From Octopus sinensis (lineage: Eukaryota): a stretch of DNA of 64,000 nt. The stretch's first letter is position 1. Each line of letters starts with the position of its first letter. Location: positions 63,686,464 through 63,750,463 of the forward strand of contig NC_043011.1 in the NCBI RefSeq assembly GCF_006345805.1, written 5' to 3'. The translations under genes and the position numbers were made by a program. Under the pieces are notes generated by a model. The model saw only the letters and a program-made list of their open reading frames with translations, was not told where the DNA came from and searched no databases. Below are positions 5,806 to 62,010 of the stretch, one piece after another.

Positions 5806-5903
5806 TTACACACCTGCGAGGACAACGAGTTTCATTAAGATCAGGAGTGAGCTTTTAACAAATGCCTTGTTACTTGAGGAGGAAGGACCCATCTTCGGAC
5901 CAA
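5806..5903 (-). CDS. Gene g4 terminal exon: (V)GPKMGPSSSSNKAFVKSSLLILMKLVVLAGV*, GPI-signal-like
   Basis: Acceptor ttctatatattgcag, phase 1 (matches the exon-3 donor), small-residue run followed by a hydrophobic C-terminus, TAA stop. Confidence 0.75.
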
Positions 5904-5965
5904 CTGCAATATATAGAATTGATGCTCAGTTAAATTTTACGTTGGACTAGTATGTTACAAGAGTC

Positions 5966-6925
5966 ACAGAAAGTCTAGAATTATGAGTGTGTTCAGAGTT
6001 TATTGGTGACATATTCCATACAGCATTCTATTTCGTCGGCATCAAAATCTGACACAGAAAGCCAAGAATCATTAGTGCGGCCAGGGTTTATTGGTGCTAT
6101 ATTCCATAGAACATTCTATTTCGTCGGCATCAAAATCTGACACAGAAAGCCAAGAATCATTAGTGCGGCCAGGGTTTATTGGTGCTATATTCCATAGAAC
6201 ATTCTATTTCGTCGGCATCAAAATCTGACACAGAAAGCCAAGAATCATTAGTGCGGCCAGGGTTTATTGGTGCTATATTCCATACAACATTCTATTTCGT
6301 CGGCATCAAAATCTGACACAGAAAGCCAAGAATCATTAGTGCGGCCAGGGTTTATTGGTGCTATATTCCATAGAACATTCTATTTCGTCGGCATCAAAAT
6401 CTGACACAGAAAGCCAAGAATCATTAGTGCGGCCAGGGTTTATTGGTGCTATATTCCATACAACATTCTATTTCGTCGGCATCAAAATCTGACACAGAAA
6501 GCCAAGAATCATTAGTGCGGCCAGGGTTTATTGGTGCTATATTCCATACAACATTCTATTTCGTCGGCATCAAAATCTGACACAGAAAGCCAAGAATCAT
6601 TAGTGCGGCCAGGGTTTATTGGTGCTATATTCCATAGAACATTCTATTTCGTCGGCATCAAAATCTGACACAGAAAGCCAAGAATCATTAGTGCGGCCAG
6701 GGTTTATTGGTGCTATATTCCATAGAACATTCTATTTCGTCGGCATCAAAATCTGACACAGAAAGCCAAGAATCATTAGTGCGGCCAGGGTTTATTGGTG
6801 CTATATTCCATAGAACATTCTATTTCGTAGGCATCGAATTCTGTCACAGCAAGCCTAGAATTATGAGTGTGTCCATAGTTTATTGGTGATATATTCCATA
6901 AAGCATTTTATTTTGTCGGCATCGA
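5966..6925. repeat. 88-bp tandem minisatellite, about 11 units
   Basis: attctatttcgt recurs at 6025, 6113, 6201 ... 6817 with exact 88-bp period. Edge units are diverged. Confidence 0.97.
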
Positions 6926-7419
6926 AATCTTTCTTACGCATTAAAAGAAAGAATTCCAATAAGTTTTTTAGCTTTCATTACTTCGGGATATTCCGACACA
7001 CACAAGCAGGATAGATCAGATTATTTACTGTCATATTTGCGAGCGGCATGAGCGCATTTATATCCGTAGAGGAAAAAAACATGATAACAGTTGAACAAAG
7101 AAAGAAGAAATCACCTTTCTGATAACCGTTTAGAACATATATCTGTGCATCCGTAGCATCAGCAGGGACCCCATTGTGTAAACGATTCCCCATTGAGTGT
7201 ATATTTTCCGTTTCTTGTGTCGGAAGATATCTTGTGTCATTTATGTGAAGAGAAAGTCGCTCAGAAGTAATCCTTGCTAAGTTAGACTCTTGCAAGGAAA
7301 TAATATCGGTTAAAGTGGCAGCCAAATTTGGGAGTGATCTGGTGTTAATTAGCGTAAAGGGCGTTTGGCGCTTTATCATTCTCTGACGAATGAAAATGTT
7401 AAAAATTTAAAGATATAAA

Positions 7420-8340
7420 TATTGCTTGTCACTAAAGGAAAATACTTAATAGAGATCTATTCATCAATTCTGCTTATGTTCAGTGTATTCTAAGTTGTGA
7501 ATATATAATGTTTCGCTAGAGATGGTTATGGAGAAATGAAATTAATGCGATATCTAATTAACGTTGATTGATTTCGTGAGATGTAGCAAAATATAAGCTA
7601 TGAATGAATAATGGGAATAAGTTGCGGAAGATATTGAATTCTTGGTCAGGCCACACCTGACAGACTTCCTATTAAGGAAAGAGAGAGTGAGAGAGAGAAT
7701 TGGAGGTAGAGACAGATAGAGAGATAGAGAGAGAGGAAGAGGTCTTTTCGAAATTTTGGGAGATATTATTGGGTCTTTTTAATAACTTAGAGATATGAGA
7801 AACAAGAAGAAGGGGTTGATAATTTTACCGTGATGATGATATTCTTTAACGCAGAACATACTCTTGTTACGATGGCACATCATTCTGTCAAGAAAATAAA
7901 TGTATCGGCTGCAGCTGGAGAAGCAGGGACGTTTGAGCATTATAGGAAGGACGAAGTCAACTGCTGCAGATCGGTTAATGGTGTCGAAGATGTTACGCTT
8001 CTTCGTTAAAGCAGCCGGCTTTTAGAATGTGGCTGAAGTTCACAATAATGTTATAGGCCTTGTTTTATCCAAGTCTATTTGGATACTTTGTATGTATGGG
8101 ACGGTGGATTGCTGTTGTGTGTGGTGGAATGTGGATTTAAATGCTTGGAAGAATAATGCCACTCGCATTCCTAGCATTTTATGATGGATGATGTGCAAAG
8201 CAGATAAATTTTAGGTGCCGTAAAACAGTTAGTGTATTGAGCAGATTGTTGGTAAGTGCTATTTGGCTGTTTGGCCTAAGGATTTTCTGTACAAATGTAA
8301 GGATATAAACTAAGGTTATGAACTAACATCGCTTTGTGTG
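7420..8340 (-). mobile_element. Highly degenerate retroelement fragment, possibly Penelope-like RT
   Basis: 7440-7830 aligns by eye with 20850-21420. Only broken RT-like peptides are visible. Confidence 0.35.
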
Positions 8341-8779
8341 TTTAGGGAGAGATACGATTCTAATATTGATATACGCACTGGTTCAAATTCACTCCTTTAT
8401 TATTGGATAATTGGATAGATATCAAAATATCCAATCGATTGTTTTAACGAACTAAATCTAAATTCACTGAATACGATGCAAATAGCAATTAAAGAACTTT
8501 GGCAAAAAACTAACAAAGGAAACGCCTTGCAGTTTACTCAAATTAAACAATCGATTAGTTGGATTGATATTTAACCAACAGACTAATAATAAGGCAATGG
8601 AAGTGAACCAAAACGTTAGTCAATAATATTGGTATTGTCTCCCTAGACATCACAAAATTTAGTCCAACACATGAATCCATATTACGAATCTTGCAAACCG
8701 GATACAAGAAAGAAGTAAGGGTGTTTGTTTCAACTGATATATCTTCTAATAATATTGGGAAAGCTTGGAAGCATCTCAC

Positions 8780-8868
8780 CATTGCAATTCTTTACATAGT
8801 AGTTGTGGTAGATATTTCTGCACTGCAAGAACATGCTGAGGAAACATTTTTCTAGTATGAGCAAGCGA
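8780..8868 (-). CDS. Gene g4 exon 3: RLLILEKCFLSMFLQCRNIYHNYYVKNCN
   Basis: Acceptor ttttcttttcttttttgcattttcag, donor GTGAGA, 89 nt, phase 2->1. Paralogous to 26672-26760, 46512-46591 and 61922-62010. Confidence 0.85.
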
Positions 8869-9543
8869 CTGAAAATGCAAAAAAGAAAAGAAAATACTGT
8901 GAAAAAGAATGAACTTAGTTTGCGGTATTTTGGAATATTTTATGTAGGGAAATTAAGTCAAAGGTATAATATTAAATTGCATTGCATTATTGACGTCGAT
9001 AATATTGGAATGCTAATAATTTGAAGCCAGAAGCATAAAATGTCGTAGGGCATGAGAGTTCTTATTTGAAGGCACAGGAATTGACATAAGAAATTATTTT
9101 CAGCCGTACACAAAAAAACCTTGTGGCTGCTCGCATTTGCAATTTGAAGACGTATAGTTAAAAGAAAATTGCATTCGTTGAAGCATGCTTGCGTGTTTGA
9201 ATGGTTGAGAAAGGTTTGTTAAAACAATAACGGCTGGATTCTTAAGTCTGTTAAAGTTTTACTTTAGATTCTGTAATTAGCTATAAACAGAGAGGAAAAA
9301 AGAATTTGATCGATCATCGCGCCATAATATCCAAGATTTATATGCTCCTTCCGTGTTCTGTTACTTATGTATTCGGATTTCACATTATCAGAAAAATATA
9401 AAGAATGCCAAATATAAATATGATAAACCAAATATTTCCGGTTAATTTCAAAAGATAAACAAACAATTTCAATGAAAATGTGAGGAAATGATTAAGCGAA
9501 AAATAGATGATAACAGCGGTAATAGCTAGAAATATATTCATAC

Positions 9544-9643
9544 TTGCAATATTTAGCATCAGGCCTACGTACAGGATACATATGCCAGGCATCCTTGCAA
9601 TACTCTTTACCGATTACATCACAAGATTTCGTCGAGGAAACAC
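9544..9643 (-). CDS. Gene g4 exon 2: VSSTKSCDVIGKEYCKDAWHMYPVRRPDAKYC
   Basis: Acceptor aaatttgtag, donor GTATGA, 100 nt, phase 1->2. Paralogous to 38264-38363 and 48936-49035. Confidence 0.85.
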
Positions 9644-9877
9644 CTACAAATTTGGCATTTTATATAAAAACGACATGATATAGTTTAGCGTAATATAAAT
9701 CATTCCTGATATGTTAAAGGCACTAAAAGCCAGCTACCAGTGGCAGACTATTTTAGATACGTTTATTATAATACACCAATGAATTTGTAAGACTACTGCA
9801 CACAATTTTCTGGACATGCCACTTACAAAGTATCTCTACCCTCTCTCATTTTCTCTGTCTGTATGTCTCTCGCTATG

Positions 9878-9908
<31 letters not shown>

Positions 9909-10714: not shown

Positions 10715-10755
<41 letters not shown>

Positions 10756-11872: not shown

Positions 11873-11970
<98 letters not shown>

Positions 11971-12341: not shown

Positions 12342-12381
12342 CTGTAATGAGTGCGGCCATAACTATGTGACTTATCATCAT
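12342..12381 (-). CDS. Gene g4 first coding exon (signal peptide): MMISHIVMAALIT(G)
   Basis: ATG, hydrophobic run, donor CAG|GTAAAT, phase 1. Parallels MKTILLVSVLIT(G) of g3. Confidence 0.7.
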
Positions 12382-17173: not shown

Positions 17174-17272
17174 CTTGTTTTATTTATATTTCCTGAGCGC
17201 CATACTAATACAATTGTTCGTTTGTTTTCCACCTGCCTTCGTCTTTTGTTTATTTTCATAAAGCTTCCCGTT

Positions 17273-17315
<43 letters not shown>

Positions 17316-18719
17316 GATCTTCCCCTCTCTGCGGCTGAACGCTCCGTCCTTGGTAGGGGTCTGCGTTTCATCCCCCTCACTCCATCCTGTAAGGAATTCC
17401 AGACGCGAGTTGATGTCCACAGCTTTGTGCGCCGTGTCCGGTTGGGTGCGCATTCAAATATTCTCTAATTTCACTGGTCCCACTCCTGAACTATATGGTC
17501 GTTACATTGACGACATTATCGGTGCCACCTCACTCTCCCGTGAACATCTAGATTCCTTCCTCTCTTTCGTCCAATCTTTCCATCCAGCTCTCCACTTCAC
17601 TTCCACTATCTCCAACACCTCTGTCTCCTTCCTCGACATTTCGGTTAGCATTCTTCACTCCACTCTTACCACCTCCATTCACTACAAACACACAGACTCA
17701 CACTCATACCTCAACTTTTCTTCTCCTCCCACCCAGAACACACCAAGCTTTCCATCCCCTATTCCCAATTCCTCCGTCTACGTAGGCTCTGTAGTGACGA
17801 CCATGACTTTGAGACTCAGTCTCAACGTATGGCTCACCACTTCACCCTACGTGGATACCCCTCACCCACTATCCACACCGCCCTTGCCAGAGCACGGTCC
17901 GTGGACCGGTTATCTGCTCTCTCCCCGAACCCGCCCTGTAGTCTCCCGCCTCCCTTTTCCCCTCACTTACCACCCACGACCCTACGTCTCCAACGCACCA
18001 TTCTTCGAGCTTTCCGTCATCTCCAGTCCGACCCGTCCACGTCACACCACCTCCCCTAACCGACCCTCCCCCTTTCAAACGAGCACACAACCTTCGAGAC
18101 CTTTTGGTCCATAGCTCCTTCCCTGACACTACCTCCCAACCCGGCTCGTTCCCCTGCTCCCGCCCACGTCGCCGCACTTGCCCTTACCTCTCCAACACCA
18201 CCCGCCGCACTAGCACCCACCATCGACCCTATCCCATCATCCACTCCTTCACCTGCACCTCCAGCAATGTTATCTATTGCGTATCTTGCTCTCTCTGCAA
18301 TTCCTTGTACAACGGACAAACGGGACGCCGCTTGGCTGACCGGTTCGCGGAACACCTTCGTGACATCCACCTTGCGAACGACACACCGGTTTCACGCCAT
18401 TTCCGCTCCACCGGTCACTCCTTGCAACATCTATCTGTGTTCGGTTTGTCCTTACACAGAGGCCATCCGGATTCCCGTTTGCGGCGTGAACAGGAATTAA
18501 TCTTCTCTCTTCGCTCTTATAAGCCATTTGGTCCCCCATCCTTCCTCCCCCATCCTCCTCCCCTTCCTTCTCCCCCTCCTCCCATCTTCCTCCCTCTCCC
18601 CCCCTCTTCTTCCCCTCCCCTTCTTTCCCCCCTCTTCTTCCCCTCCCCCCTCTTCCTCACTACACCACCCGACTTTACACATCACATCATATATGATGTG
18701 CCATACTAATACATACACC

Positions 18720-20357: not shown

Positions 20358-21570
20358 GCAGGCCTTATGAATCGATGCATTGATTGGGACATTTAATCAT
20401 GCTCTGCTACCTAATGCCTCACTTCAGGTGTTGATTATATAATATTTCAGATATTAAGAGATAGACGGGTACATTTCAAAAACATTAAATCATAACTTTG
20501 CGACTTCCTGTCCATTCTCTATTTTATTATAATACTAAGAAACCAGTGTCTTTAAATGTGCGACTGTTTTATTCATAATAGTAAATATCTTATAGGAACA
20601 GCGAGAAAAGCGATTCATATATGTCAGCAAACGAAATTATTTATGCATCCGCACAGAATTGAAGCATTTAGAATTAACTATTTCCTCAGGAAAGTTTGTA
20701 CATTGATTTCTAAAACTAGTTATTCGGTCATGAGTTGATTAGATATTTGGCGTTTGGCATTTGGTCCTGTATGGTGTTCTGGCAACAGAAAACGTTAGAA
20801 TTTTCCTAAACGCTAAAGACATAACTATTGCATGGCCCTAGAGGAAAATGCCTTCTTGAGATCTGTGCATCAAGTCTATTTATGTTCAATGTGTTCAAAG
20901 TTGTGAATAGATAATGCTTCGCCAGAGAAGATTATGAAGTAATGAAATTAAAGCGACATCTAATTAATAGTGCTGGATTTTGTAAGATGTAGCAAATTAT
21001 AATTTCTAAATGGACAACAGGGAAAGTTTGATGGAGGAAATGGCATCGTTGGGCTGGCCATAGCAGGAAGAGAGGAAGGCAGAAAAATATCTATCAAGTC
21101 CTGTGGGTATAATGTGTTCTCATTCGAGATTTTCTTTGGTCAAAATAAAAGATGTTTGGAGACTAATATGAGAAGGTATCACATGCAAGTAAGTCTCGGT
21201 TGACTATTTAATTCTGCCAAAAGCCACAATGTTACCTTCATCAAATATTTAAGCATGAGACCATTCGAGAAGGTTATTAAGGAGAGACAAAAAGAGAGAG
21301 TAGCAGTAAGAGAGGAAGAGCAAGGTATCTTCAAAGTTTTGGAAGACATCATTGGGCTATTTCTATGTACGTAAGGATATGAGGAACGAGCAAAATACGG
21401 TGATAATTTTAACTAACGGTGTCAATGTTTCATGGGTAATATAAAAATACCAGGCACTATGAATCAATGCATTGATTGGGACATTTAATCAAGCTTTGCT
21501 ACCTAATGTTTCGTTTCAGGAAATGGTTATATAATATTACAGATAACAAGAGATATACGGGTACTTAGAA
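20358..21570. mobile_element. Old element bounded by ~120-bp diverged direct repeats (20358-20480, 21451-21570)
   Basis: Shared tatgaatc.atgcattgattgggacatttaatca... The interior is related to 7440-7830. Confidence 0.5.
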
Positions 21571-23523: not shown

Positions 23524-23618
23524 TCAGGACAACGAGCTCATAAGTACCAATAATATGCTAATTCTGCTAATATTGTCTGAGCGATCTGCGTTGGATGCAG
23601 ATGTGGGATGAGTCACAT
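23524..23618 (-). CDS. Gene g3 terminal exon: (N)VTHPTSASNADRSDNISRISILLVLMSSLS*, GPI-signal-like
   Basis: Acceptor tatgtttcag, phase 1, S/A/N run then hydrophobic tail, TGA stop. Resembles the 60258-60367 and 5806-5903 tails. Confidence 0.75.
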
Positions 23619-26671: not shown

Positions 26672-26760
26672 TTTTGCAATTTTTTTTATAGGCCTCTCGA
26701 AAATAGACGCGACACTGCAGGAAATTGTTCGTAAAACAATTTTGATATAGAATGATGCGC
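26672..26760 (-). CDS. Gene g3 exon 3: RIILYQNCFTNNFLQCRVYFREAYKKNCK
   Basis: Acceptor ccaattttgtag, donor GTAAGT, 89 nt, phase 2->1. Shares CF...FLQCR...Y.KNC with g4. Confidence 0.87.
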
Positions 26761-27666: not shown

Positions 27667-30600
27667 CCTGCTAATATATACATGCAATTGAATTCAGAAA
27701 TTAAAAAAATATATACACACTATACATATACATACAAACATATACATACAAACTATCAACAACAAAAATACAGAAGAATACAGATCTGCTAGCCTTAAGA
27801 AGCTGCGCTACGAGCAATACTTACGTGTAGAGAACCCTAAACTGACAGATCCATCTCCTAATGTAAGAGTGGAAGCTCGTCATGCTTCAATGTCAACAAA
27901 GCAAACTACAAACCGCATTGATCGTTGCGCGGATTACAAAAGAACACGTAACCGAAAATTGAACCAAATTCTGATTGAAAAATCAGCTACTGGATCAAAT
28001 CTTCCCAACACACAGGAGCTGGGCTTACCCCACAACCGGAATATTCCTACAGATGGTCATCCATACTCGTCACCAAATAATCAAAAGAAAAAGAAGGAAA
28101 AATGGTCTAGGGAAGATAATAAAGAAGTTCTTGCGGCCTTCTACCATGCCATATATTCCCCCACAGATAAATCGAACACTATACAAACCTACATAATCTG
28201 GAGACAGAAACACCCTGAAGTAAGACCCTACATAGACAGTAACAAACTTGCTAACGTCAGAAGAAACATTATAAAAAAAAAATTACTGACTGAAGTAGAG
28301 ATTGATCAAATTAGACAAGCAATATCGGATAGAATGAACGAAGCTGCAGCTAAAGAAGATAATACAGAGGAAATAATTATAGACCAGCCCAGGGCTGATA
28401 TAAACGAAGTGAGGATTGAAAGAGTTAGTATAAGTGATAGGCAAAGTGAAATACGCTAAGACAGATGAGCATCAAATAGATGAAGAAAGTCACACAAATA
28501 TTGACCCAACAGAACTACATGAGCTAAAAAAATCAAATCATGATTGAATGGCTGAAAATTAAAGAAACCAGCATGGATGAGCGTGATACACTTCCTAAAA
28601 TCTGCAACTCTAAACAAAACATGAAAATATTTGGTAATCCGGCTTGCACTAAAGGATATAATTTCAGTTAATGATGTTGATATCACAAGTCTCAACCACC
28701 TATACTATGCATCCGCGAAAATCTCAACGATCCTATGTGGTGTAAAGATTAGAAAACGGCAACATTCCCACAAAAAGCCTTCTTGGCAAGAGCGTTTGCA
28801 ACAACAATTTAAAATATTTAGATCTGACATTGAATATTTGAAAAACCTAGACTACCAAACCTACAAAAACCCAAAAATTAATGACAAAATATAATATGAA
28901 AACTATACTTGATTTGATGCCACCATAGAAACCATCAAACAAAAGGTATCTGCCAAACCTGCCCGCATAGCGAGGTATGAAAAGCGTGTTAGATTTTTCA
29001 AGTACAACAACATGTTCAAAAATAACCCCAATAATTTTTACAGGAAGATAGGAAAAACAGCAGTTACTGAAAGGTCTGTACCATCAAAAAAAGAAGTACA
29101 GGGATTTTGGAATAAAATTTGCGCAGAAGAAAAAACACACAACGAAAAGGCTCCCTGGATTGACAGAATATCTACAGAACTGGACTCCTTAGAAGAGCAA
29201 AAGTGGGAGGGTGTCAAGGTAGAAGATATAAGATCTGCTCTCAGAAGGTTAAGCAAATGGAAGTCTCCAGGAAAGGACAAAATTACTAACTTCTGGCTGA
29301 ATGCCTTCCCAGAGAGCCATGAACTGCTAACATAACTATATAATGATGTTTTGCAACACCCTAGTAGGAAGCCTCCTTGGCAAGTTAATGGGTTAGCATT
29401 CCTGCTTCCAAAAAGTGAAGAAACAAATGAACCAAAAAACTATAGACCCATAACCTGCTTAACAACAATGTATAAAACGCTAACATCTGTCCTGAAGGAA
29501 TATACTTATAGTTTTTTTAAGAGACAGCAGCATATTCCCTAATGAACAGAAAGAATGTAAACGTGGATCCTACGGTTGTAAAGATCAACTACTCATCAAT
29601 AAGATGATCTTAGAAGATTGTCAAAAACGACACAAAATCTTATCAATAGCCTGGATAGACTATAAAAAGGCTTTTGATAGCCTGCCACATAGCTGGATTA
29701 AGAAATGCCTGGGAATGTATAAGATAGCACCTACTCTGCGAAACATTTTGTCTGTAAGTATGAGATCATGGAGAACCACACTAACTTTGAACAGTGACAA
29801 TAAATCTCTAAATGCTGGTGATGTAAAAAATTCATGTGGCATTTTCCAGGGTGACTCAATGTCACCACTCCTCTTTTGTTTAGCCTTAATACCTCTCTCA
29901 AACTGCTCAATGACGCGCAGTAGGGGTATAAAATGTTTGATAAAAATATAAATCATCTCATTTACATGGAAGATTTAAAGCTCTTTGCAAAAAATGACAA
30001 ACAACTCAAGGGCTTACAAGCGATAGTCAAACAATTCAGTGACGACATCAGAATGCAATTCGGCCTCGATAAATGTGCAAAAGCTACCTTTATCAAAGGA
30101 AGAATGACAGAAACATCTAACGTTAACCTTGACCAGCAGAATGTCATAAAAAAACTAGACCCAGCGGAGAGCTACAACTACCTGGGGGTAATTGAAGGGG
30201 ATGGAATAAGGCATTCAGAGATGAAAAAAAAGGATCAGGAGAGAATGTTATTACAGCGTTAGAGCAATACTCAAGACAGAGCTGAATGCAAGAAACAGGA
30301 TCGAAGAGATCAATGCATTAGCCATACCAGTCGTGACTTACAGTTTCAATATCGTTAACTGGTCAATTACTGAAATATGTAATCTTGACAGAAAAATACG
30401 AAAACTGTTGACAATGCATAGAATGCACCACCCTCAGGCACATATAGAACGACTTTACCTGTCAAGAAAAGAGGGAGGCCGTGGACTTTTACAAATGGCA
30501 ATAACAATGAAGATTGCTACAATTGGCCTAGACACCTACCTGAAAAACTCTGAGGACTGGATGTTAAAACTTGTCTCAAAACATGAAAACAAGAAAGCAT

Positions 30601-31698
30601 CATACTCAGTAACAAAATAGGCAAAGGAATATCTAAGTGAATTCCGAATACAACAAATTTCGGAATTAGAGATATACATACAAGAAGCAAGCACAGAAAA
30701 AGCTAAGCGCATGAAAACCCGTGCCAAAACTGCGGCCTTAGATATTCTGAATGATAAATGGCAAGAAAAACCTCTCTATGGCAAATACCCAAAGAGAGCG
30801 AATAATGCAGATATTGACAAAGCCCAGACCCATCAATGGCTAATGGCCTCTGGCTTAAAATCTGAAACAGAGGGGTTTATCATAGCAGCTCAAGATCAAT
30901 GCCTACCAACAAGAAACTACCGGGCCAACATATTAAAAATCAGCAGCAGTCCAACGTGTTGTGTATGCCAGCAACAAAATGAAACCATTGAGCATGTGGT
31001 CTCCAAGTGCAGTCCTCTAGCGGCTACAGAGTATCTTAACAGACACGATAGAGCTGCACAATATATTCACTGGTTCATCTGAAAAAACCTGGATTTGCCC
31101 ATGAAAAAAAATTGGTGGGAACACCAACCACCCCCAGTGCTTGAAAATGACCACATTCAAACTGACAGAAAGATAGATGCAAATAGGCCAGGCATCATAT
31201 TGAAAGACTTCAAACAAAGAATATGCCTCCTCATTGATATGAGTGTCCCAATCGATATAAACGTATCTGTCAAGACCTACCAAAAACTGAGCAAATATAA
31301 AGATCTTGAAATAGAAATCAGCAAAATGTGGAACCTGAAGACTAAAACAATACCTGTTGTCATAGGTGCCCTGGGAATGATAGCAAAAGGGGCTGATAGC
31401 TACCTAACTCAGATAACAGGAAACCCCAAAATGGCAGAAATTCAAAAGATAGTGCTCATGGGAACTGCTCATATCCTACGCAAAATACTTTCTATGTAAT
31501 CTCAAGTTTTAAAACAAACATAAATTTCGGTTTACAAAAAAATAAAATTTTTAGACATTCATTAGTACAACCCCCCACCCAAATATATAGCACACTAGGC
31601 ATAACAACAACATGAACTTCCAACCCTGTTGTCTCTTGAGGTGTCTGGGTGAGACTTGGAGCCAACTTGTACAAATATAAAGCAAAAGTCAAACATAG

Positions 31699-31914: not shown

Positions 31915-34900
31915 TTGTAAGCGGAACAAATGGACCCGAGAAGAGTATAAAGAAGTAATATACGCTTATTACTATGCATTAGGTAGGCCATCTGAAGAGA
32001 GACACACCGCAAACTCTTACAGTATGTGGAGAACACGGAATCAAGACAGTAGACCCTATTTGGACGAGAACAAATTAGCAAATGTGAGGAGGGATATCCT
32101 TAGAAATAACAGACTCACAGACAGTGAAATAAGCGCGATCAAGCACGCAACCGAAATGACATAAATATAAGACACAAAGGAAATGAAGAATCAGATGAAC
32201 AGTATAGCCCGCCACGAGGCTTAATTGAAAGACTGCCATCTGACCAAAGTACGCAAAGGCCTGAAGATACAAGAAATTCTATTGTACCTGTTAAAGATAG
32301 CCAGGAAAACGATAAAACAACAGTAACTGAAGATCTCACATTTGCTGAAGAACACAGAGAGTCTATGGCAGAAATCAGGCAGAAATCCTGAATACGCTTG
32401 AAGTTGTAAGACATACAAGTATGAATGATAGAGAACCACTTCATAAACTCTCAAATACAAACCAAGATAAAAAACAAATCCAAATTGGCAACTATGTAAC
32501 AAATGAAATAATACGAGAATTAAAACCTGATTTTACTGAGTTAAATGAAATTATTTACGCTTCTGCTAGGGCAATTGAAACCAGCTGTATGACCCCGAAA
32601 AAACAAAGAAAACCAAACCTGGGAAGAAATTAAACCTGGAGATGTAAAATTGAAAAAGAGATTGAATTTATGAGAGGGGAAATATCAATATTAAATGAAC
32701 TAATATGTGGAAATGATGTAAGATCCAGAACAGGAAGAAAGATGAAGAGAAAATTTGGATCCTCACCAAGAGAAGAACCCATATCAATAAAAGAAACGCT
32801 GAAACAAAAAGTCCAAGCAAAAGCCCAAAGAATACGAAGATTTGAGAAGAGAAACACGTTTTACAAGCAAAATAAACTGTTCACATACAATGCCAAAAAT
32901 TTCTATAGAGAAATAGGGAAGGCGAAAGTAACCGTTAAAGACCCCCCTCCCATGGAAGAAATTCAAAACTTTTGGAAAAGGATTTGGAGTGACAAGAAGA
33001 CGTACCACATAAATGCAGACTGGATTATACAAACTGAAGGATCCTACCAAAATTTACAACAACAAGCATGGGAAGACATCACAATAGCAGACCTAAGAAA
33101 GGCACTCACGAAGGCCAATAATTGGAAATCCCCCGGTAAAGATTGGGTGCCGAATCTCTGGCTCGCAAACGGTAAGCTAGTTCAGCTGCTTACTGGAATT
33201 ATGAGAGACCCAAAGAAAACACCTGAATGGTTAGCAAGTGGTATTACTTACCTACTTCCAAAGAATAACGAAACCAACCTTCCAAAAAACTATCGGCCTA
33301 TAACCTGTCTATCCACCACGTATAAAATCCTAACATCTATCCTGGCGGAGAAAACATATGCATTCATGGAGAAGAACGATATTTTCCCTATTGAACAAAA
33401 AGGGTGCAGCCGAGGCTCTTACGGATGCAAAGATCAACTGCTAATTAATCTTATGACCCTTGAGAACTGTCACAACAAGCGCAGAAATCTCAGCTCCGCA
33501 TGGATTGACTATAAAAAGGCCTTCGACAGTATACCGCATCCATGGATCTTGAGATCGCTGGACATCTTCAAAATTTCCCCTGTGATTTCAAACTTCCTGA
33601 AGCACAATATGTCGTTGTGGAATACGAATCTCCAATTATACCACTCTAATGGATTACGTGCCTCAGAAAATATAAACATCAACTGTGGAATTTTTCAAGG
33701 TAACTCACTTTCACCTTTATTATTCTGCATAGCCCTAATACCCCTTACAAGTGAATTTAACAGAACAGGGTATGGGTATATATAATTGCCAATAAAAAAA
33801 GTAAGCCATCTATTTTATATGGATGACTTAAAACACTATGGTAAAGACAATAATGGACTTGAAGGCCTATTGCGCACCGTGAAAGCATTCAGCGATGACA
33901 TCGGGATGGAGTTTGGACTTGAGAAGTGTGCCACGGCCACTTTCCAGAAACGGAAAGTGAAGACCACAAATTCAGTCGTGTTAGATGTTGACACAGTCAT
34001 AAGAGAGCTTGAGCAAGAACAAACATACAAATATTTAGGGATAAATGAAGGCTCTGGTATTCAGCATGCAAACATGAAAGAGAAAATCAGGAAGGAATGT
34101 TATAGGAGAGTTCGTGCAGTCCTGAACTCTGAACTAAATGCACGTAACAATGTGTTAGCTATAAATTCCTTAGCAGTTCCAGTTGTGTTGAACTGGAATA
34201 TGAGTGAAGTAAAGAATATAGAAAGGAAAATACGCAAGCTGCTGAGTTGTGACAGGATGCACCACCCAAAGGCAGACGTAGATCGCCTTTACCTTCCCAG
34301 AGCCCAAGGTGGTCGAGGCCTGATCCAAATTGAACTAGCTTACAAAACAACCACAATTGGAGTGGCTAAATATCTCGAAATAACGAATGACTGGATGCAA
34401 AAGCTCGTGGAAAATCACGAGAGACGAAAGAAGCTTCATTCTATCATAACGGAAATCAAAAAATTGCTATTGATCTCGTGCAGGATACCCAAACTGAACA
34501 ACCCGAGGGAAGCACGGCAACTATTGTTGCAAAGAAGGTAAAAATAATGGCAATGAAAAAAGCGCTCGAGCAATTGGCTGATTGGTGGGATGAGAAACCT
34601 CTGCACGGCAAATATGTGGCCCGCAGCAAACAAGCTGATGTTGACCAGAAGGAAACCCATCAGTGGCTACGGAGCTCAGGGCTAAAAGGAGAGAGCGAAG
34701 GTTTCATCCTGGCTGCTCAAGATCAAAGCCTATTAACCCGGAACTACCAGGCCAATGTGATGAAAAATGGAGCAGACCCAATATGGCGATTCTGCAACGA
34801 CATGATCGAAACAGTGGACCACCTAATCTCTGGATGAAAAGTCTTAGCACCAGTGGAGTATAAATTAAGACATGACAGAGTTGGCCAATATCTACACTGG

Positions 34901-38263: not shown

Positions 38264-38363
38264 CTGCAGTATTCCACGTCTTTCTTACGTATAGGAAACG
38301 TTCTTAAGGCAGTCCTGCAAAATTTTACGGCCGTGTTTTCGCAAAACTTTAGTGTGGAGGCCC
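38264..38363 (-). CDS. Gene g3 exon 2: ASTLKFCENTAVKFCRTALRTFPIRKKDVEYC
   Basis: Acceptor tactcatttgcag, donor CAG|GTATAA, 100 nt, phase 1->2. Confidence 0.87.
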
Positions 38364-38727: not shown

Positions 38728-38764
38728 CAGTAATTAGAACAGAGACCAAAAGAATCGTTTTCAT
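38728..38764 (-). CDS. Gene g3 first coding exon (signal peptide): MKTILLVSVLIT(G)
   Basis: ATG-K-hydrophobic run, donor G|GTATGT, phase 1. Confidence 0.82.
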
Positions 38765-45857: not shown

Positions 45858-45994
45858 TTACATCAAAATAGATTTCTCTTCCCTTTCAAACATCGGTATA
45901 ACAATCAACAGAAGGAATGCGTATGAATTAGCAATGTTGGGCGAAGGAACACCACCATCTGTCTTTACAAGTTCATCAATTTGTGCAGGTGTAT
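45858..45994 (-). CDS. Gene g2 terminal exon: TPAQIDELVKTDGGVPSPNIANSYAFLLLIVIPMFEREEKSILM*
   Basis: Acceptor ttatatttcag, phase 1 is the only open frame, hydrophobic segment, TAA stop. Confidence 0.6.
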
Positions 45995-46168
45995 CTGAAA
46001 TATAACAAAGAGGTGTTTAATTAACAGTGGGTTGAGAGTATTATATGTTAATTTGAAATCATCTATTGGGCTCATTGAAGCTGGACTAACATAATTTAAT
46101 TACATCTATATAATTATATTTAAAGTAAGCTGATGCCATTTCTCCTTACGTATCACTAGACGTATTAC

Positions 46169-46511: not shown

Positions 46512-46591
46512 AATTGCAGACAATGGTCCTGAGAATTGTTGCACATGGTTCGAATATTGGCTGCAAACATTTCCTATATACAAGCACACGT
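46512..46591 (-). CDS. Gene g2 exon 3: RVLVYRKCLQPIFEPCATILRTIVCN
   Basis: Acceptor atatttatttttcag, donor GTATGT, 80 nt, phase 2->1, same R1/C8/C16 register as the paralogues. Confidence 0.8.
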
Positions 46592-48935: not shown

Positions 48936-49035
48936 TTGCAGTAATTCACATCTGGGTCGCATATAGGTTGTCTAAGCACGGCACTTGGACACGTCTTCGC
49001 AGCAAGTCTGGCGCAAAAGTCTGACGTTGAAAGAG
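48936..49035 (-). CDS. Gene g2 exon 2: LSTSDFCARLAAKTCPSAVLRQPICDPDVNYC
   Basis: Acceptor aaattgtag, donor AA|GTAAGC, 100 nt, phase 1->2, 8 of 32 residues invariant with g3 and g4. Confidence 0.85.
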
Positions 49036-56484: not shown

Positions 56485-56534
<50 letters not shown>

Positions 56535-56536
<2 letters not shown>

Positions 56537-56732: not shown

Positions 56733-56790
<58 letters not shown>

Positions 56791-59711
56791 TTGATTCTTT
56801 GAACATTTACTTGAGAATACTAGCAGCGATAAGTTTAGTTGTTCTCGGATCGATTTACCGTTCATTTTCTAATAACACGTTTGCAGAAACTTCCCTCATT
56901 TCCTTGTAGCAATGATGGCTGTTTCAGATGCTTGTTTTGCAGTTATAATGTGAGATAGATAGTGATAAAATGCATATCCATGTAACTATATTATATTCTC
57001 GCTGGAGTCTAACGTTGCAATATATTACGTATTATATGATGTACATATATAATATGTACATTATCTGTGTATGTCGATATACTTTACTTACAGGTAACAT
57101 CCAGCTTTCTCTGCGATGTTGGAGGACTTTTAATAAACAGATTTATCTTAAGGGAAACACATTATTCTGCTGTACTGATGTCAATACTATATCAGTGAGA
57201 ATTGTTCATATGGAGACATAAGGCTTTAGAGAACGCCGAAATGTTGCTGCAAGAGCATCGAAATATGTACCATGAGAGTTGCTGATACGGCTGATGTATG
57301 TAATAACATACGAGGCATTTTTTGTATCTGACAATCGAACATGAAATATTTTCTTTGAAAAACACACAGTAGTGTTCTATCTCTCTTATTTTTTTTTGTT
57401 TTGTTTTTGTTTTTGAAGTTGGTTTATCGATTTGTATCAATACATTACACCTTTCGAAAGAGGAACAATGGCAAGAAATACGGAACTCAATTGATTATAT
57501 AAAAAGACAGCCGATTGCTGTCTCCCATTCAATTGTTAACAATGAAATTCGTAAACGTAGCAAGATTTATGTCCAAATGGAATTAGACGGAAACGAACTT
57601 TATCATGTTTGCGTAATACTAACCCTATGTATAATGGAAATATTGAGGCCCGAAAGTCAACCGAAAAGGAGAGGATAAGGACAGAAGAACGAGTCAATAC
57701 ACAAAATAATTCGCAACAAAATCCTGCAGCCTTAACGGAAAGGCATTCAGCAACACACATCAAAGAAACCATTAATTTAAACAACGATCAGGATCGATGG
57801 GATATTTGTCGTAGCACGGAAAAACATTTTAATTACTTCTATCGCCTGCTACGGAACATCTGAATCTAGCTCATATAAGAAAACAGGTTGTCGAAGTAAG
57901 TTCATATATCTGCGTGTTTATTTGCGAGAATGTGTGTGTGTGTGTGTGTGCGTGCGGCTCTCAATATCGGTGTTTAATAATTGATTGTTGCATTCGACCA
58001 TCCAATATATTGGTAAAAACCTTTCCTTACTACTGTATTTATCGGTTTTCGTTGTTCAGTGCAAACTATATTACAGAATAAGATTTTGATGAGGAATTGA
58101 AGGAAACATTTTTTTTGCATATTACCTTAAATATTAGTCCTATTCTCTTTAATCCGTCTAATTCGTTTCTAGTTAGGTGTCAGATGATTTACATCATGGG
58201 AAATGTGTACAGGAATAGGTCAAATGAGTTATGTCAGACGGCTAAACTTGTAAACGTAGCCGTAATCTCATTCACTCTTTAATATACAGCTTTGTGGCCA
58301 TTACACTGTGTAACATTTTTTTTTAAAGCAATTTGTTTTTGGCCCCTGTTTTTTGTTTCTTAATTGCTTCTATCTGGAAATCAAAGGAAATGACTACTAT
58401 TCCCTTCAAACTGTACTTATGTTACTTGGGCATCAATTTGCTGATACAGAAATATCGTTAAAGCAAATATACTGCTCAACACTATAGATTTGCCTGTCCG
58501 TCGCTGGACCTTAATCACATGTGCAGATCCGTTTATGACTGACAATATGTGGCTCTTTGATTCTGAGCAGGAGTAGTGTTGAAGCGTCTAGCCATGTATT
58601 GAGAGGGATACTTTGGAGTTTAGTAAATGTAAGAAACACGGGATTTGAAGGAAATATAAAATATTTTCATTATTTTTAGAAGTAAGCAAAAGGGAAATAA
58701 GAATTGCTTCCAAAGAACAAAAAAAAAACATGTTGCATAGTGTTAACTATACGGGAAACAAAGAAACAAATGTGAAATCTTGCAATCAAACTACATGCAT
58801 GATGATATTACTTTGAATGACATGAGCAGGAAAATACACAATATTTTCCAATATTATGGCTATAATTTGTTATTATTACCTGGCCCTTTAAACCGCCTTT
58901 AACCAGAAGCTTTCATATATTTCACATCATGATGAAGTTTCTAAATTTCATTTAAATTTCTTGTGTTGTCGGTTTCTTTTGATTATTGAAATGCAACAGT
59001 GCTGACGCCATTATGAAAGTCGAACAAACGGATCCTAGTAACAATTATTTTTTAAAATTCTGGTATTTATTCATTGACAACTTTAGCCGAACTATTCGTT
59101 ACATGTACGAAAGCAAACCAAAACTAGTTGCGAAGTTGCAAAGAATACAAACTCAAGAATACTCAACTACACACACACACAAGCACACATGCACACACGC
59201 ACACATGCACACAAGCACACACACACACAAGCACACATGCGCACACGCACATCTATATGTATAGCTTTCTGCTAATATATGTTACCCAAATTACTCGGCA
59301 ACTGGTGTCGGTTTCTTTTCATCCACATAACATAGCATTTCCATGAAAGAGGACGATAGCATAAATACCACAGAATAATTAATTGGATCGACATGTTGGA
59401 CCAAATCCCTGAAGACGGTGGCGTCGCATGGCGAATTTCTACAAACTGGAACAAATAAAAGATTTAAAAGAAACGCAAATATAGCCTCATAGATTTTTAT
59501 TTCAGTATGTTTTCCGAAAGTATGTCTCATTGTTTGAAATGTGATCTACAAAAGAAATAGAAACATCCATGTGTTAAAAATATGTATTGGGGGACATTTG
59601 ATGTTAAATTTTTAAAATTCTATTTACCGAAGAGTTGTGTGTATTGACATGACAACGGCAATATTATTTTCTACTCTGGACACCATGGCGAAACATTGGG
59701 GGAGGGGCCAG

Positions 59712-59950
59712 GCGATTAGATCGACCCCAGTACGCAACCTGTACTTAATTTATTGACCCTGAAATGATGGAAGGGAGAGTCGACCTCGGCGGAATTTGAA
59801 CTCAGAACGTAACAATTCCGCCAAGGTCGACTTATCTTTTTATCCTTTCGAGGTCGATAAATGAAGTACCAACTGCGTGGAGGGGGTCGATCTAATCGAC
59901 TAGCTCCCTCCCCAAAATATCGAATCTTGTGCCTAGAATAGAAATGACTA
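59712..59950. mobile_element. Two octopus SINE fragments in inverted orientation
   Basis: 59712-59812 (minus) and 59813-59950 (plus) both match the 5520-5620 segment. Confidence 0.75.
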
Positions 59951-60257
59951 TTTACGTATGCTCAGCGTAGGCACGTCCGCACGTAGGCACCAAACAATAG
60001 CAACAACAGGGTTACGTTGTTATTCTGTTATCATGTAGATATTTCAGTCCTGTTACAGTGATATGCATATGATATTATGTAGATATCAATGTAGTATTGT
60101 GCAGATATTAACACTACTATAAGAGTGATGTAGAAATGTTCGAATAATATTCCTTACCTTATTGAGATCTTCACGCCTGTCTCATCGAGACCAATGAAGA
60201 ATGTAAGTACTTTTAGCGTCATAAATATTCTCTCAAGTCCAATGTGTTTCTCTTCTG

Positions 60258-60367
60258 TTACACCAACAACGATATAATGAGTATCAGTAATACATTCTGC
60301 GAAATGGCATTACTGGATGCAACATGTATTTCTATTTCTCTCTTATGTTCAACGGACGTATGTACGC
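60258..60367 (-). CDS. Gene g1 terminal exon: (C)VHTSVEHKREIEIHVASSNAISQNVLLILIISLLV*, GPI-signal-like
   Basis: Acceptor tttattttcactattccag, phase 1, ASSNA followed by a hydrophobic C-terminus, TAA stop. Confidence 0.75.
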
Positions 60368-60864
60368 CTGGAATAGTGAAAATAAATGTATAACTGGCTT
60401 TCGATCATATATTACTTTGATGTGTACAGTTTCATTTACTAAACTGCCTCAGATAAACTTTCATTGAAATTGTATATTCCACTACTTTCCATTTATAATA
60501 TGAGCATCTACGTAGTTTATTTTTCTTTTTACATCAACTAAAATGACTTCTATTAAATCGTATTTAGTTATCAATCAACAATTATGGACTTTCGTTTATA
60601 TAAACTTAGAATATAGAAAACCATAGGAGGGCGGAAAACGATCTTCATTACCCAATCGGATATTTAAATTAGATTATATTAATTACTGATTCTCGCTGAG
60701 GAAGAAGGACAGAATTTTTAGAGACGATGCTTATTATATCGACGTGAGCCATTCGATGGTCCTTTATTTTATTGTCTCCGAAAACATAAAAAAAAATCAA
60801 AGCACTGAACAGTTGGAGTTTTGGAATTTAAATTCAAAAAGTGAAAAAAAAGAATTAACGAACA

Positions 60865-61380
60865 TAGGGGCAGGCATGGCTGTGTGGTAAGAAGTTTGCT
60901 TCCCAACCGCACAGCCAGGGTTCTTTCCCACTGCGTGGCACCTTTGTCTATTGTGTTCTACTACAGCCTCGGACCGACTAAGCCTTGTGAGTGGATTTGG
61001 TAGACAGAACATAAAAGAAGCCGGTCATAAATCCATGTACGCATTTGTGTGTGTGTGTGTGTGTGTGTTGTCTGTGTGTATGTGTTGTCTGTGTGTGTGT
61101 GCGTGTTGTCTGTGTGTGTGTGTTGTCTGTGTGTGTGTGTGTTGTATGTGTGTGTGTGTGTGTTGTCTCTGTGTGCGTGTAGTGTTTGTCTCTCTGATAT
61201 CCACTTGACAATCGGTATTGTTTACGTAACTATGACCTTGTCTTTTGGCAAAATACACCGATGAAGAAAGCACCAGGCTCTGAAAAAAGTACTAGCTCTT
61301 GGGGCGATTCTCTGGACTAAAATTCATTAAGGTGCAGCTCCAGCATTGCTACAGTCTAATGTCAGAAACAATTAGAAGTT
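60865..61380 (+). mobile_element. Octopus SINE with expanded internal (GT)-rich tract
   Basis: Homologous to 10549-10962. Confidence 0.8.
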
Positions 61381-61921
61381 AAAAACAAATTACCAATTAT
61401 TTTGCTAACCAGTCACTTTTGATTTTTAAAAAAATTATTGACGGTTTTTATATTTGCTAAAAGTACATTGTCGAGTTCATTTTCGTGTCTAGTTTTCAAG
61501 ATTCATTATTCGAATTCGTATGTGGAAACCAATTTTGTTGCGCCTAGGGAGGGTCATTATTACAATATTCTTAACTCACACATTAAGTTCCTTTTTAAAA
61601 TTTATAATCAATGTAATTTATATTTCTCTTTAAATCAATTAGATTGACTTGTACGAAATCGTTATTAGTCACCACCCAACGGTACGGACATCGGTTTGTA
61701 CAAAAATAGGATATAAAGAACCATAAAACAGCGGTTGGAGGAGATTTTGTAGGCGCGTTTATTAACAATATTAGCATAATGACTTTCCCTATACACAACA
61801 AAAAATGTTATGCTGATTTGAATAAAACATGAACAGTTAACAATTATATTTATCATGGAAAATACGGTTTTTTTAAAACCTGCTTCTAGAACAGAGACTC
61901 AAATAATTAAAAATATCTTAC

Positions 61922-62010
61922 AACGGCACGCTCTCATATAGAGATTTTTGAAACGAATACTGCATTCATCGGATAATTTTTCGAAACATTTGTAGTTTGC
62001 AAGCGTCCGT
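61922..62010 (-). CDS. Gene g1 exon 3: RTLANYKCFEKLSDECSIRFKNLYMRACR
   Basis: Acceptor cactttattcttatccag, donor GTAAGA, 89 nt, phase 2->1, R1/C8/C16/Y24/C28 conserved. Confidence 0.83.

Follow-up and report, generated by a model that had tools for sequence, protein, structure and literature searches.

The tandem genes and their exons

The window, meaning the whole analysed stretch of 64,000 nucleotides from Octopus sinensis, contains a tandem row of tiny, paralogous four-exon genes, all lying on one strand. A sequence-only reading had described this row as a hidden cluster of at least four paralogues, and its two full gene models, g4 (108 amino acids) and g3 (106 amino acids), were re-derived letter for letter, each with four minus-strand exons, AG/GT at all junctions, GT...AG introns throughout and a stop codon at the end of the last exon. 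Exon 1 encodes the signal peptide, exons 2 and 3 the two halves of a six-cysteine domain, and exon 4 a short Ser/Thr/Asn-rich linker followed by a hydrophobic C-terminus. The exons located within the window are as follows.

12342..12381, minus strand: g4 exon 1, 40 nt; ATG and signal peptide MMISHIVMAALIT(G); GT donor, phase-1 end
9544..9643, minus strand: g4 exon 2, 100 nt; encodes the N-terminal half of the domain with Cys1-Cys3 (VSSTKSCDVIGKEYCKDAWHMYPVRRPDAKYC); AG/GT sites; exact scaffold-pattern match at C15:63696005, also matched by the profile
8780..8868, minus strand: g4 exon 3, 89 nt; encodes the C-terminal half of the domain with Cys4-Cys6 (RLLILEKCFLSMFLQCRNIYHNYYVKNC); model and profile match
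5806..5903, minus strand: g4 exon 4, 98 nt with the stop included; Ser-rich linker, then a hydrophobic C-terminus in GPI-signal layout
38728..38764, minus strand: g3 exon 1, 37 nt; ATG and signal peptide MKTILLVSVLIT(G)
38264..38363, minus strand: g3 exon 2, 100 nt; Cys1-Cys3; profile match and scaffold-pattern match at C15:63724725
26672..26760, minus strand: g3 exon 3, 89 nt; Cys4-Cys6; model and profile match
23524..23618, minus strand: g3 exon 4, 95 nt including the stop; linker and hydrophobic C-terminus
48936..49035, minus strand: g2 exon 2, 100 nt; Cys1-Cys3 and an additional Cys (PICDPD); scaffold-pattern match
46512..46591, minus strand: g2 exon 3, 80 nt, shorter by three codons; Cys4-Cys6 spaced C-x7-C-x8-C
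61922..62010, minus strand: g1 exon 3, 89 nt; Cys4-Cys6 (RTLANYKCFEKLSDECSIRFKNLYMRAC); profile match
60258..60367, minus strand: g1 exon 4, 110 nt including the stop; linker and hydrophobic C-terminus ending in ASSNAISQNVLLILIISLLV

Exon 1 of LOC128249788, the O. bimaculoides orthologue of g4, is likewise 40 nt long, and g4 exon 3 shares 96.6% nucleotide identity with its O. bimaculoides counterpart, compared with 75-79% in the flanking intron. The ATG of g3 is present in its orthologue LOC128249786, for which RefSeq starts at a further in-frame ATG upstream, and a portion of the O. vulgaris model CAI9735834.1 matches g3 exon 3 with 100% identity. The intron between exons 2 and 3 of g3 spans 11.5 kb and is full of retroelement debris. 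The genes had been called hidden, which holds insofar as no protein identical or nearly identical to g3 or g4 occurs in a collection of 5.8 billion proteins that includes other O. sinensis RefSeq proteins, but does not hold for O. bimaculoides, where orthologues are annotated in RefSeq.

Both g1 and g2 had been taken as partial. In fact, g1 is an intact gene of 111 amino acids (exons of 37, 100, 89 and 110 nt) whose exon 2 lies at 64218-64119 in window-extended coordinates, 119-218 nt past the right end of the window, and whose exon 1 lies at 68885-68849, about 4.85 kb past it. At the protein level, exon 3 of g1 and the corresponding stretch of O. bimaculoides LOC106870880 are 90% identical by tblastn. 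For g2, the description stands, as searches for its exons 1 and 4 found neither. Exon 3 of this copy was detected at E about 0.02 by a profile built without it, and its AG/GT sites and reading frame are intact. An O. bimaculoides orthologue of g2 was not found, and the 2.2-kb segment carrying its exon 2 is missing there; g2 is probably a decaying two-exon core and not a live gene.

The three exon-2 copies in the window are each exactly 100 nt long, with S2, C7, C15, A18, P23, D28, Y31 and C32 unchanged in all three, exon 3 measures 89 nt in three of four copies, and the intron phases are 1-2-1 in every copy, all as originally reported. Exons 2 and 3 together form a single module of 63 codons with phase 1 at both ends, so that modules can be spliced serially. 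For a genome-wide search, a pattern was used that consisted only of the invariant exon-2 scaffold and its splice sites, with the reversed pattern as control. With one mismatch allowed, 73 matches were found compared with three for the control, and exact matching gave 44 compared with none, which places the exon pattern of the window far beyond chance.

In total, the Octopus family comprises about 67 domain modules by the one-mismatch search, located in two chromosomal clusters, and the row in the window extends past both of its edges. The figure of at least four paralogues was correct in identifying tandem, same-strand copies, but was a large underestimate and included the probably dead g2. 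Sister genes on another chromosome (the chromosome-6 cluster) carry two to nine modules in series and have no tail. Multi-domain members include LOC128248155 with nine domains and LOC128249887 with three, the latter annotated with six splice isoforms, an indication that it is transcribed. Six cysteines are unchanged across 34 highly diverged domains. Every relative traced belongs to an Octopus species, in line with the lineage restriction proposed earlier, and the proteins constitute a real, fast-evolving and undescribed family of Octopus surface proteins.

Orthologues and selection

Four genes have one-to-one orthologues in O. bimaculoides, with identical exon lengths and gene order kept; RefSeq lists these (LOC128249786, LOC128249788, LOC128249789 and LOC106870880) as separate genes, all named "uncharacterized". 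Between the two species, dN/dS ranges from 0.46 to 1.07 per gene (g1 0.46, g4 0.92, g5 1.07) and reaches 0.73 when the four pairs are pooled, and amino-acid change is thus close to the neutral rate, bearing out the fast evolution between cysteines that had been read from the paralogues. With values near 1, g4 and g5 would also be compatible with weak functional constraint.

Conservation of reading frames, cysteines, splice sites and exon lengths far exceeds neutral expectation. No indels occurred in 969 coding nucleotides, compared with 70 in 3,293 nucleotides of flanking intron (P about 1e-9). Measured against a neutral model, the lack of premature stops (P = 0.002) and the retention of 18 of 18 cysteines (P = 2e-4) and of 18 of 18 splice dinucleotides (P = 0.0017) all pointed to selection on the scaffold; selection on cysteines and reading frame was a check that the sequence-only reading had suggested. 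Both the simulated neutral evolution and the difference in indels between coding and intron sequence are incompatible with drift in g3, g4 and g5.

Predicted fold and nearest known families

The earlier characterisation as small secreted, GPI-anchor-like proteins with six cysteines agrees with the predicted layout of signal peptide, six-cysteine domain and hydrophobic tail, and members of the C15 type agree with one another in signal peptide and C-terminal layout. In g4, the hydrophobic run reaches the extreme C-terminus and is accompanied by four small-residue omega candidates; the g4 tail includes a Lys, and some tails of the family are only 12-15 residues long. Judged by this layout, the proteins are probably GPI-anchored. 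AlphaFold2 predicted helices at residues 18-28, 30-35, 45-55 and 61-75, with a pLDDT of about 90 over residues 20-75. The module is confidently predicted as a compact fold with three main helices bundled together, in which the six invariant cysteines would form three disulfides.

No Pfam family claims the proteins of the window, and g3 and g4 gave no RGM_N match in the Pfam scan. Among the members scanned, RGM_N was the only recurring family (about 12 of 31, always in the same register), with scores of only about 10-17 bits per domain. P0010, which has two dissimilar domains, exceeded the curated cut-off (29.1 bits, E = 1.2e-6), and so did P0006 with the best Pfam score, which is inflated by near-identical internal repeats; the same repeats also give spurious NPR2 and cofilin matches. 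In the reciprocal direction, the family profile matched only RGMB chains among all PDB sequences (E = 0.026). The hhalign score of the family against RGM_N was 20.5, compared with 8.9 +/- 2.1 (maximum 14.9) for 100 shuffles, and the two subfamilies aligned independently in a common register; individually, RGMB scored 22.2, RGMA 14.0 and octopus RGM 12.6. As the sole recurrent and reciprocal match, RGM_N appears to be the nearest known relative, at borderline significance, and the two domains may be homologous.

[quoted passage not shown] Like the octopus family, RGM proteins (RGMA/B/C, hemojuvelin, DRAGON; RGM_N PF06535; structures 4UHZ, 4UI0, 6Z3H) combine a signal peptide, a six-cysteine helical domain and a GPI-type C-terminus, and both share a C-x8-C-x7-C core preceded by D-x2-[YF]-C-x-x-L. 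The RGM N-terminal domain consists of three helices with three disulfides, and membrane tethering is needed for its full effect (PMC7354924). However, the aligned core covers just 24-32 residues and consists mostly of the C-x8-C-x7-C spacing. Outside the core, the family has C-x7-C-x16 where RGM has C-x4-C-x22, and the last cysteine is preceded by x11 instead of x21. The family lacks the RGM_C/partial von Willebrand D domain and the GDPH autocleavage site, and the BMP/GDF-contacting motif R-G-[DN]-x-L...H is unconserved in its alignment. An intron divides the family module and is absent from the octopus RGM N-domain, and the O. sinensis genome has one conserved RGM gene as opposed to about 67 fast-evolving copies. 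Foldseek with the full-length model returned neither an RGM structure nor any match at E < 1.

Other known systems resemble the family in more general terms. GDNF-family receptor alpha and GAS1 are GPI-anchored, all-helical, cysteine-rich and extracellular, and their domains bind cystine-knot growth factors, but with ten cysteines per about 85 residues instead of six per about 58. The GDNF/GAS1 name given by UniRef to the member A0A0L8GPX5 is unsupported, as PF02351 matched no member at E <= 10; the family profile scored at noise level against the GAS1-like domains of the genome (12.8, probability 1.3%). The Ly6/uPAR proteins (CD59, Lynx1) are the same genomic kind of family, being small, GPI-anchored, disulfide-rich, tandem-expanded and fast-evolving, whereas their fold is a beta-rich three-finger one with 8-10 cysteines; no UPAR_LY6 match was found among the members scanned. 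Plasmodium 6-Cys (s48/45) proteins share only the cysteine count and, in some members, GPI anchoring. Their fold, a beta-sandwich of about 120 residues, has no sequence or predicted-fold resemblance and is unrelated, and "6-Cys" is used here descriptively only.

Possible function and alternative explanations

The leading explanation, considered reasonably probable, is that the units are separate and live genes with four exons each, members of an Octopus-restricted family encoding RGM_N-like, GPI-tethered binding modules. The protein would enter the secretory pathway and lose its signal peptide, and the C-terminal signal would be swapped for a GPI anchor, leaving a helical knob of roughly 65-70 residues exposed on the cell surface; the tail-less sister proteins with two to nine modules would be secreted. 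Because RGM_N is the only recurrent and reciprocal match, the anchored proteins are proposed, by analogy, to bind secreted partners in the manner of co-receptors or ligand traps, and the partner need not be a BMP. Selection would fix the scaffold while exposed residues diversify, so that each paralogue could have its own specificity.

A true orphan family whose resemblance to RGM_N is convergent, with secreted or anchored proteins acting otherwise, is a less likely but serious alternative. Small three-helix bundles with three disulfides could all have such cysteine spacing, and octopus RGM itself scores at noise against the family profile; the low scores per domain, the repeat-inflated P0006 result, the Foldseek outcome, the missing contact residues and the differing intron position point the same way. 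Fast evolution in tandem arrays is typically seen in families with a chemosensory, immune or reproductive function. The roles to be considered are transport of pheromones or small hydrophobic ligands, for which insect odorant-binding proteins and plant GPI-anchored lipid-transfer proteins are precedents, or immune or reproductive recognition. Convergence would, however, have to account for the recurrence of RGM_N in constant register, the reciprocal match to RGMB, the result for P0010 and the separate alignment of both subfamilies, and the order of signal peptide, N-terminal helical six-cysteine domain and GPI-type tail would be a further independent coincidence.

The gene models themselves could be read in two other ways. 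It seems improbable that the units belong as modules to a single long multi-domain gene with internal signal and tail exons skipped, as would be permitted by the phase-1 modules, the single strand and the existence of multi-domain members, since, g2 apart, each unit starts with an ATG/signal exon and ends with a stop/tail exon of its own. These terminal exons keep length and frame in O. bimaculoides, and their selection (no stops, no indels) would be unneeded if they were skipped. That the frames are non-functional relics or chance splice-like assemblies in AT-rich DNA is very improbable. The dN/dS values of g4 and g5 and the relic-like g2 would suit this explanation, and most exons are conserved no better than adjoining introns. 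Against it stand the rejection of drift, the low dN/dS of g1, the scaffold matches in the genome, the unchanged cysteines and the confident fold prediction, and for g1, g3 and g4 it is already contradicted.

Gene models in the window

Translation of the minus-strand exons of g4 and g3, two of the four-exon paralogues in the window, exactly reproduced the proteins of 108 aa and 106 aa that had been read from the sequence alone, with AG before and GT after every exon and a stop closing the last one. Intron phases were 1-2-1, as described. The exon copies were recovered by tblastn and exon-level profiles, and the eight residues reported as invariant were common to all three exon-2 copies. The sequence-only reading had taken both g1 and g2 as partial. 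This holds for g2, of which a two-exon core is present, but not for g1, which runs past the window edge and became a complete 111-aa gene once 10-kb genomic extensions were added; only its exons 3 and 4 lie inside the window.

Exon copies and g1 exons (window coordinates, extended past the edge where marked)
9643-9544, minus strand, exon-2 copy, 100 nt
38363-38264, minus strand, exon-2 copy, 100 nt
49035-48936, minus strand, exon-2 copy, 100 nt
8868-8780, minus strand, exon-3 copy, 89 nt
26760-26672, minus strand, exon-3 copy, 89 nt
46591-46512, minus strand, fourth exon-3 copy (g2), 80 nt, weaker match with the frame kept, left out of profile building
68885-68849, minus strand, g1 exon 1, extended coordinates, outside the window
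64218-64119, minus strand, g1 exon 2, extended coordinates, outside the window
62010-61922, minus strand, g1 exon 3 and exon-3 copy, 89 nt, inside the window
60367-60258, minus strand, g1 exon 4, inside the window

As a working definition, a family member contains a 100-nt and an 89-nt exon with phase 1 at both ends of the pair, encoding C-x7-C-x2-A-x4-P-x4-D-x3-C / x8-C-x7-C-x11-C. This pattern is complete in g3 and g4, complete in g1 save for Ser replacing Ala, and present in exon 2 of g2, the third exon of which is 80 nt long. For g2, a scan for hydrophobic ATG exons that took splice sites into account gave no convincing signal exon and an acceptor/tail scan no convincing tail exon, nor was there convincing DNA or peptide similarity to exons 1 and 4 of the paralogues. 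Its domain, which stands alone on a long branch of the domain tree, has seven cysteines and a third helix of reduced length. A 2.2-kb segment with g2 exon 2 (window 49846-47626 vs 21503-21517 of the O. bimaculoides DNA L023) is missing in O. bimaculoides in an otherwise alignable interval, with both flanks at ~81%, which reflects either a deletion in O. bimaculoides or an insertion in O. sinensis. This exon has diverged too far from those of the paralogues for a recent copy, and g2 is regarded as a decaying or lineage-restricted copy.

Retrocopies were considered as proof of splicing and rejected, as the one-piece matches were exon-2 copies with spurious extensions. A search with Rfam revealed no RNA genes in the window.

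Family size, orthologues and selection

A 104-nt exon-2 pattern (AG, spacing, Cys-x7-Cys-x2-Ala-x4-Pro-x4-Asp-x3-Cys, two more bases, GT) was searched in the 2.72-Gb O. sinensis genome, with the reversed pattern as control. Exact matches numbered 44 vs 0 in the control, and 73 vs 3 when one mismatch was allowed, which is more than chance would give. About 67 matches are credible, in two places plus unplaced scaffolds. The tandem cluster proposed earlier is present, but "at least four" paralogues was far too low a number.

Location of the credible exon-2 matches
C15 (contig carrying the window), 63.11-64.95 Mb: cluster 1, ~36 matches, contains the window
C6, 28.01-28.74 Mb: cluster 2, ~25 matches
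Unplaced scaffolds: ~7 matches

Outside the window, seven near-identical exon-2 copies (GIALTEFCTDTAKSYCREANDKYP...) lie 7-22 kb apart at G000:C15:63110974-63176498 (plus strand) and indicate recent local tandem amplification inside an older family. The C6 cluster, also outside the window, spans 28010347-28055528 (plus strand) and 28637031-28742816 (minus strand) with ~25 modules, among which exon 2 occurs in two intermingled types, one with the canonical acceptor and the other with an acceptor ~9 nt further in (ATnTnTTGCAG). This cluster is probably the counterpart of O. bimaculoides LOC128248155 (9-domain, secreted) and O. sinensis LOC118763774. Exons 2 and 3 together measure 189 nt and have phase 1 at either end, so that modules can be concatenated in frame, and C6-type members carry 2-9 modules in series without a tail.

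In O. bimaculoides, gene order is unchanged and introns are several-fold shorter. Exon lengths, taken for this species from models rebuilt on its DNA, are the same in both octopuses. The domain tree pairs the genes 1:1, and the paralogue branches far exceed the orthologue distances; thus, the duplications long preceded the split of O. sinensis and O. bimaculoides.

Orthologues in O. bimaculoides RefSeq, with shared exon lengths (nt) and tree support
g4: LOC128249788 (108 aa, 70% identical); 40/100/89/98; support 100/99
g3: LOC128249786; 37/100/89/95; support 90/80
g1: LOC106870880; 37/100/89/110; support 100/99
g5 (next gene downstream, outside the window): LOC128249789; 37/100/89/95; support 100/99

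For the four orthologue pairs pooled, dS was 0.220, dN 0.161 and omega 0.73, which bears out the fast evolution suggested before; per gene, omega was 0.46 (g1), 0.64 (g3), 0.92 (g4) and 1.07 (g5). Flanking introns of the two species differ by p = 0.163, so amino-acid change proceeds near the neutral rate. Insertions and deletions amounted to 70 events in 3,293 aligned intron nt vs 0 in 969 coding nt (three pairs), where ~20.6 would be expected (P about 1e-9). When neutral substitution was simulated at the observed divergence, all three frames stayed open in 0.2% of trials and all 18 cysteines survived in 0.02%. All 18 splice dinucleotides are kept (neutral P = 0.0017). The scaffold of the modules is held by selection and is not drifting. 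A lack of purifying selection on the cysteines and frame had been named as evidence against the genes; what was found is the opposite.

In RefSeq, family members have as many as six splice isoforms. Isoforms of the NCBI pipeline derive from transcript alignments, and these entries are thus the only indirect support for transcription. The O. bimaculoides locus LOC128249887 (proteins P0007 and P0039-P0043) has three modules, a GPI-type tail and six annotated isoforms, among which the first (signal) exon and the splice sites within modules vary, so that splicing adds to the diversity given by gene number.

Searched exhaustively with an HMM, 1.84 billion representatives yielded 33 relatives, all unnamed, and those that could be traced were from Octopus, in line with the proposed lineage specificity. 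Among 5.8 billion clustered proteins, none was identical or nearly identical to g3 or g4, and an exact look-up in transcript-derived collections retrieved neither. The expectation that annotation would miss these genes was correct in that g3 and g4 are apparently absent from public protein sets, but RefSeq has their orthologues as uncharacterized loci. For O. vulgaris, the model of this region, CAI9735834.1 (P0001), is a chimera covering window 26672-26760 and about 45900-46000, which joins a doubtful first exon between g2 and g3, g3 exon 3, and exon 2 of a family gene ~50 kb downstream. Together with the missing g3 and g4, this means that the genomes concerned should have their annotation revisited with an exon-pair profile. 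Several other O. vulgaris models (P0006 and P0008) resemble fusions of adjacent family genes. Searches by gene identifiers and descriptive terms found no description of the family in the searchable literature; the genes are real and, judged by that literature, undescribed, but as RefSeq already has parts of the family as uncharacterized loci, the sequences are not entirely new.

Predicted protein and likeness to the RGM N-domain

In an alignment of 34 domains, six cysteines are invariant and Pro, Asp and Arg near-invariant at ~27% background identity, which agrees with the six-Cys domain of otherwise divergent sequence postulated earlier. AlphaFold2 with a 21-sequence alignment gave pLDDT about 90 for residues 20-75 (a 9-row alignment reached only 56), with helices at 18-28, 30-35, 45-55 and 61-75, counted as three main helices (18-35 kinked, 45-55, 61-75); the linker that follows is disordered and leads to a helix at the end of the chain. 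C15-type members, g1, g3 and g4 included, have a hydrophobic N-terminal signal and end 27-35 residues past the last domain Cys. By a purely rule-based check, the hydrophobic stretch of this tail runs exactly to the C-terminus, and small residues that could serve as omega sites lie 17-32 positions before it. This layout is that of a predicted GPI-attachment signal. Just 3' of the stops (window 5806-5790 and 23524-23508, minus strand), the first 20 nt of the g4 and g3 3' UTRs are alike (tggaataataattcaaactg vs tggaatagaaattcaaccga), whereas the coding parts are only ~32% identical at the protein level; conservation of a 3' regulatory element may be the reason.

The name "GDNF/GAS1 domain-containing" that UniRef gives one member was rejected, as it had no support from Pfam or from comparing profiles with the GAS1-like gene of the same genome: PF02351 had no match at E <= 10, the named member included, and hhalign against the octopus GAS1-like domains gave a probability of 1.3%. 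The GDNF/GAS1 domain has ten cysteines, the family domain six. Ly6/uPAR proteins have a beta-structured three-finger fold with 8-10 cysteines, in contrast to the all-helical six-cysteine model, and UPAR_LY6 had no match in any Pfam scan of the family.

A link to repulsive guidance molecules (RGM) came from the Pfam N-terminal domain RGM_N (PF06535, curated cut-off 24.2 bits). g3 and g4 had no RGM_N match, and no Pfam family reached threshold for them. Sub-threshold matches occurred in 5 of 21 single-domain relatives (E = 0.026-0.7), in a single register with profile positions about 20-47 on D-x2-YC-x-RL-x5-C-x7-C. The multi-domain relative P0010 scored above the cut-off (29.1 bits, E = 1.2e-6) and two others just under it (P0011, 22.2 bits; P0021, 22.0 bits); the repeat-inflated 37.9 bits of P0006 were discounted because near-identical repeats also yield spurious matches. 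Reciprocally, the domain-only family profile retrieved RGMB chains alone from 177,635 distinct PDB sequences (E = 0.026-0.14). Comparison by hhalign scored 20.5-22 against RGM, compared with 8.9 +/- 2.1 (maximum 14.9) for 100 column shuffles, and placed both subfamilies in the same register. RGMs are GPI-anchored and have an N-terminal bundle of three alpha-helices with three disulfides; the family model has three main helices, and its six invariant cysteines may form three disulfides.

Against homology, the matched core is just 24-32 residues and the match is uneven across RGMs, with the octopus RGM at noise level. Foldseek with the full-length AlphaFold2 model, its signal and tail helices untrimmed, found nothing in the PDB at E < 1 and no RGM structure, a weak negative. 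The main rival explanation is an orphan family with a cysteine spacing convergent with RGM_N and a different binding role. RGM contacts its ligands by Arg100, Gly101, Leu103 and His106 (PMC7354924); the family lacks this BMP/GDF-contacting alpha2-alpha3 linker (Arg-Gly-[Asp/Asn]-x-Leu) and the alpha3 His, and shows after Cys5 RNIYH (g4), RVYFR (g3), SIRFK (g1) and TLYFS (g5), with the consensus x-x-Y-F. Also absent is the C-terminal RGM_C or partial vWD domain, which in RGM has a GDPH autocleavage site and binds neogenin; Pfam scans of the family proteins showed no RGM_C match. The true RGM of the O. sinensis genome, with GDPH, lies at C2:164.24 Mb and is without the intron that splits the family module. 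The family is not filed as RGM itself, and homology of its module with RGM_N is considered somewhat probable.

The analysis shows how the genes are built, how large the family is, its synteny, the selection acting on it and the fold predicted for it, and beyond these we infer a chain leading to a cell-surface knob. Secretion would be followed by signal cleavage, three disulfides would form in the module, and GPI attachment would place a helical knob of ~65-70 residues on the outer leaflet. The RGM N-domain is essential for BMP/GDF binding and most effective if membrane-anchored (PMC7354924). By analogy, we propose that the knob is a tethered module that binds secreted ligands by surfaces specific to each paralogue; the tail-less multi-module proteins would be soluble counterparts. 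It seems rather unlikely that Octopus took the ligand-capturing N-module of the single-copy morphogen co-receptor RGM, stripped the rest and amplified it to ~67 diversifying GPI-anchored or secreted modules. If it did, these would be lineage-specific co-receptors or traps tuning BMP/TGF-beta-type or other cystine-knot signalling, or alternatively a cell-surface recognition code, with octopus-specific tissues such as suckers, skin and the enlarged nervous system as candidate sites.

Cephalopod novelties have mostly been tied to expanded known families such as protocadherins, zinc fingers and chemotactile receptors, and many "cephalopod-specific" genes are still blank. The present family is large (~67 modules), with clear selection on the scaffold, rapid change of the surface and a predicted cell-surface location, and has no name in Pfam or the searchable literature. 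Small Cys-rich surface proteins that are lineage-specific and tandemly expanded are a familiar kind of family; the new part would be an amplified, diversifying RGM-N-only version. Confirmation of the RGM N-domain link would make binding of secreted cystine-knot ligands a testable hypothesis and provide a rare case in which a module of a morphogen co-receptor was multiplied to yield a repertoire that diversifies. The results are solid and may be of use in cephalopod biology, although the tie to a known fold is borderline.

Repeats around the genes

A transposable-element origin of the exons was rejected, because copies occur only in two clusters with conserved synteny and because the true retroelements of the window sit within introns and on the other strand. 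Two decayed non-LTR retroelements (27692-31499 and 32634-34837, plus strand), which match Pfam RVT_1 and zf-RVT and have stops in their frames, fill the 11.5-kb intron 2 of g3. The same intron is about 0.5 kb long in O. bimaculoides; thus, inserted retroelements account for much of the extra intron length in O. sinensis. The minus strand carries a related 3' fragment at 102-686. Intron 3 of g4 contains an 88-bp unit in 11 tandem copies with 96% matches (5965-6930), and this array stops 62 nt upstream of the last g4 exon. Between g3 and g4, long Pro/Ser-rich open frames with a GIY-YIG-like motif (17209-18709, plus strand; Pfam GIY-YIG at E = 0.11 only) lie in a 16-20 kb block of strongly negative GC skew (-0.39), and these frames may be the remnant of a Penelope-like retroelement.
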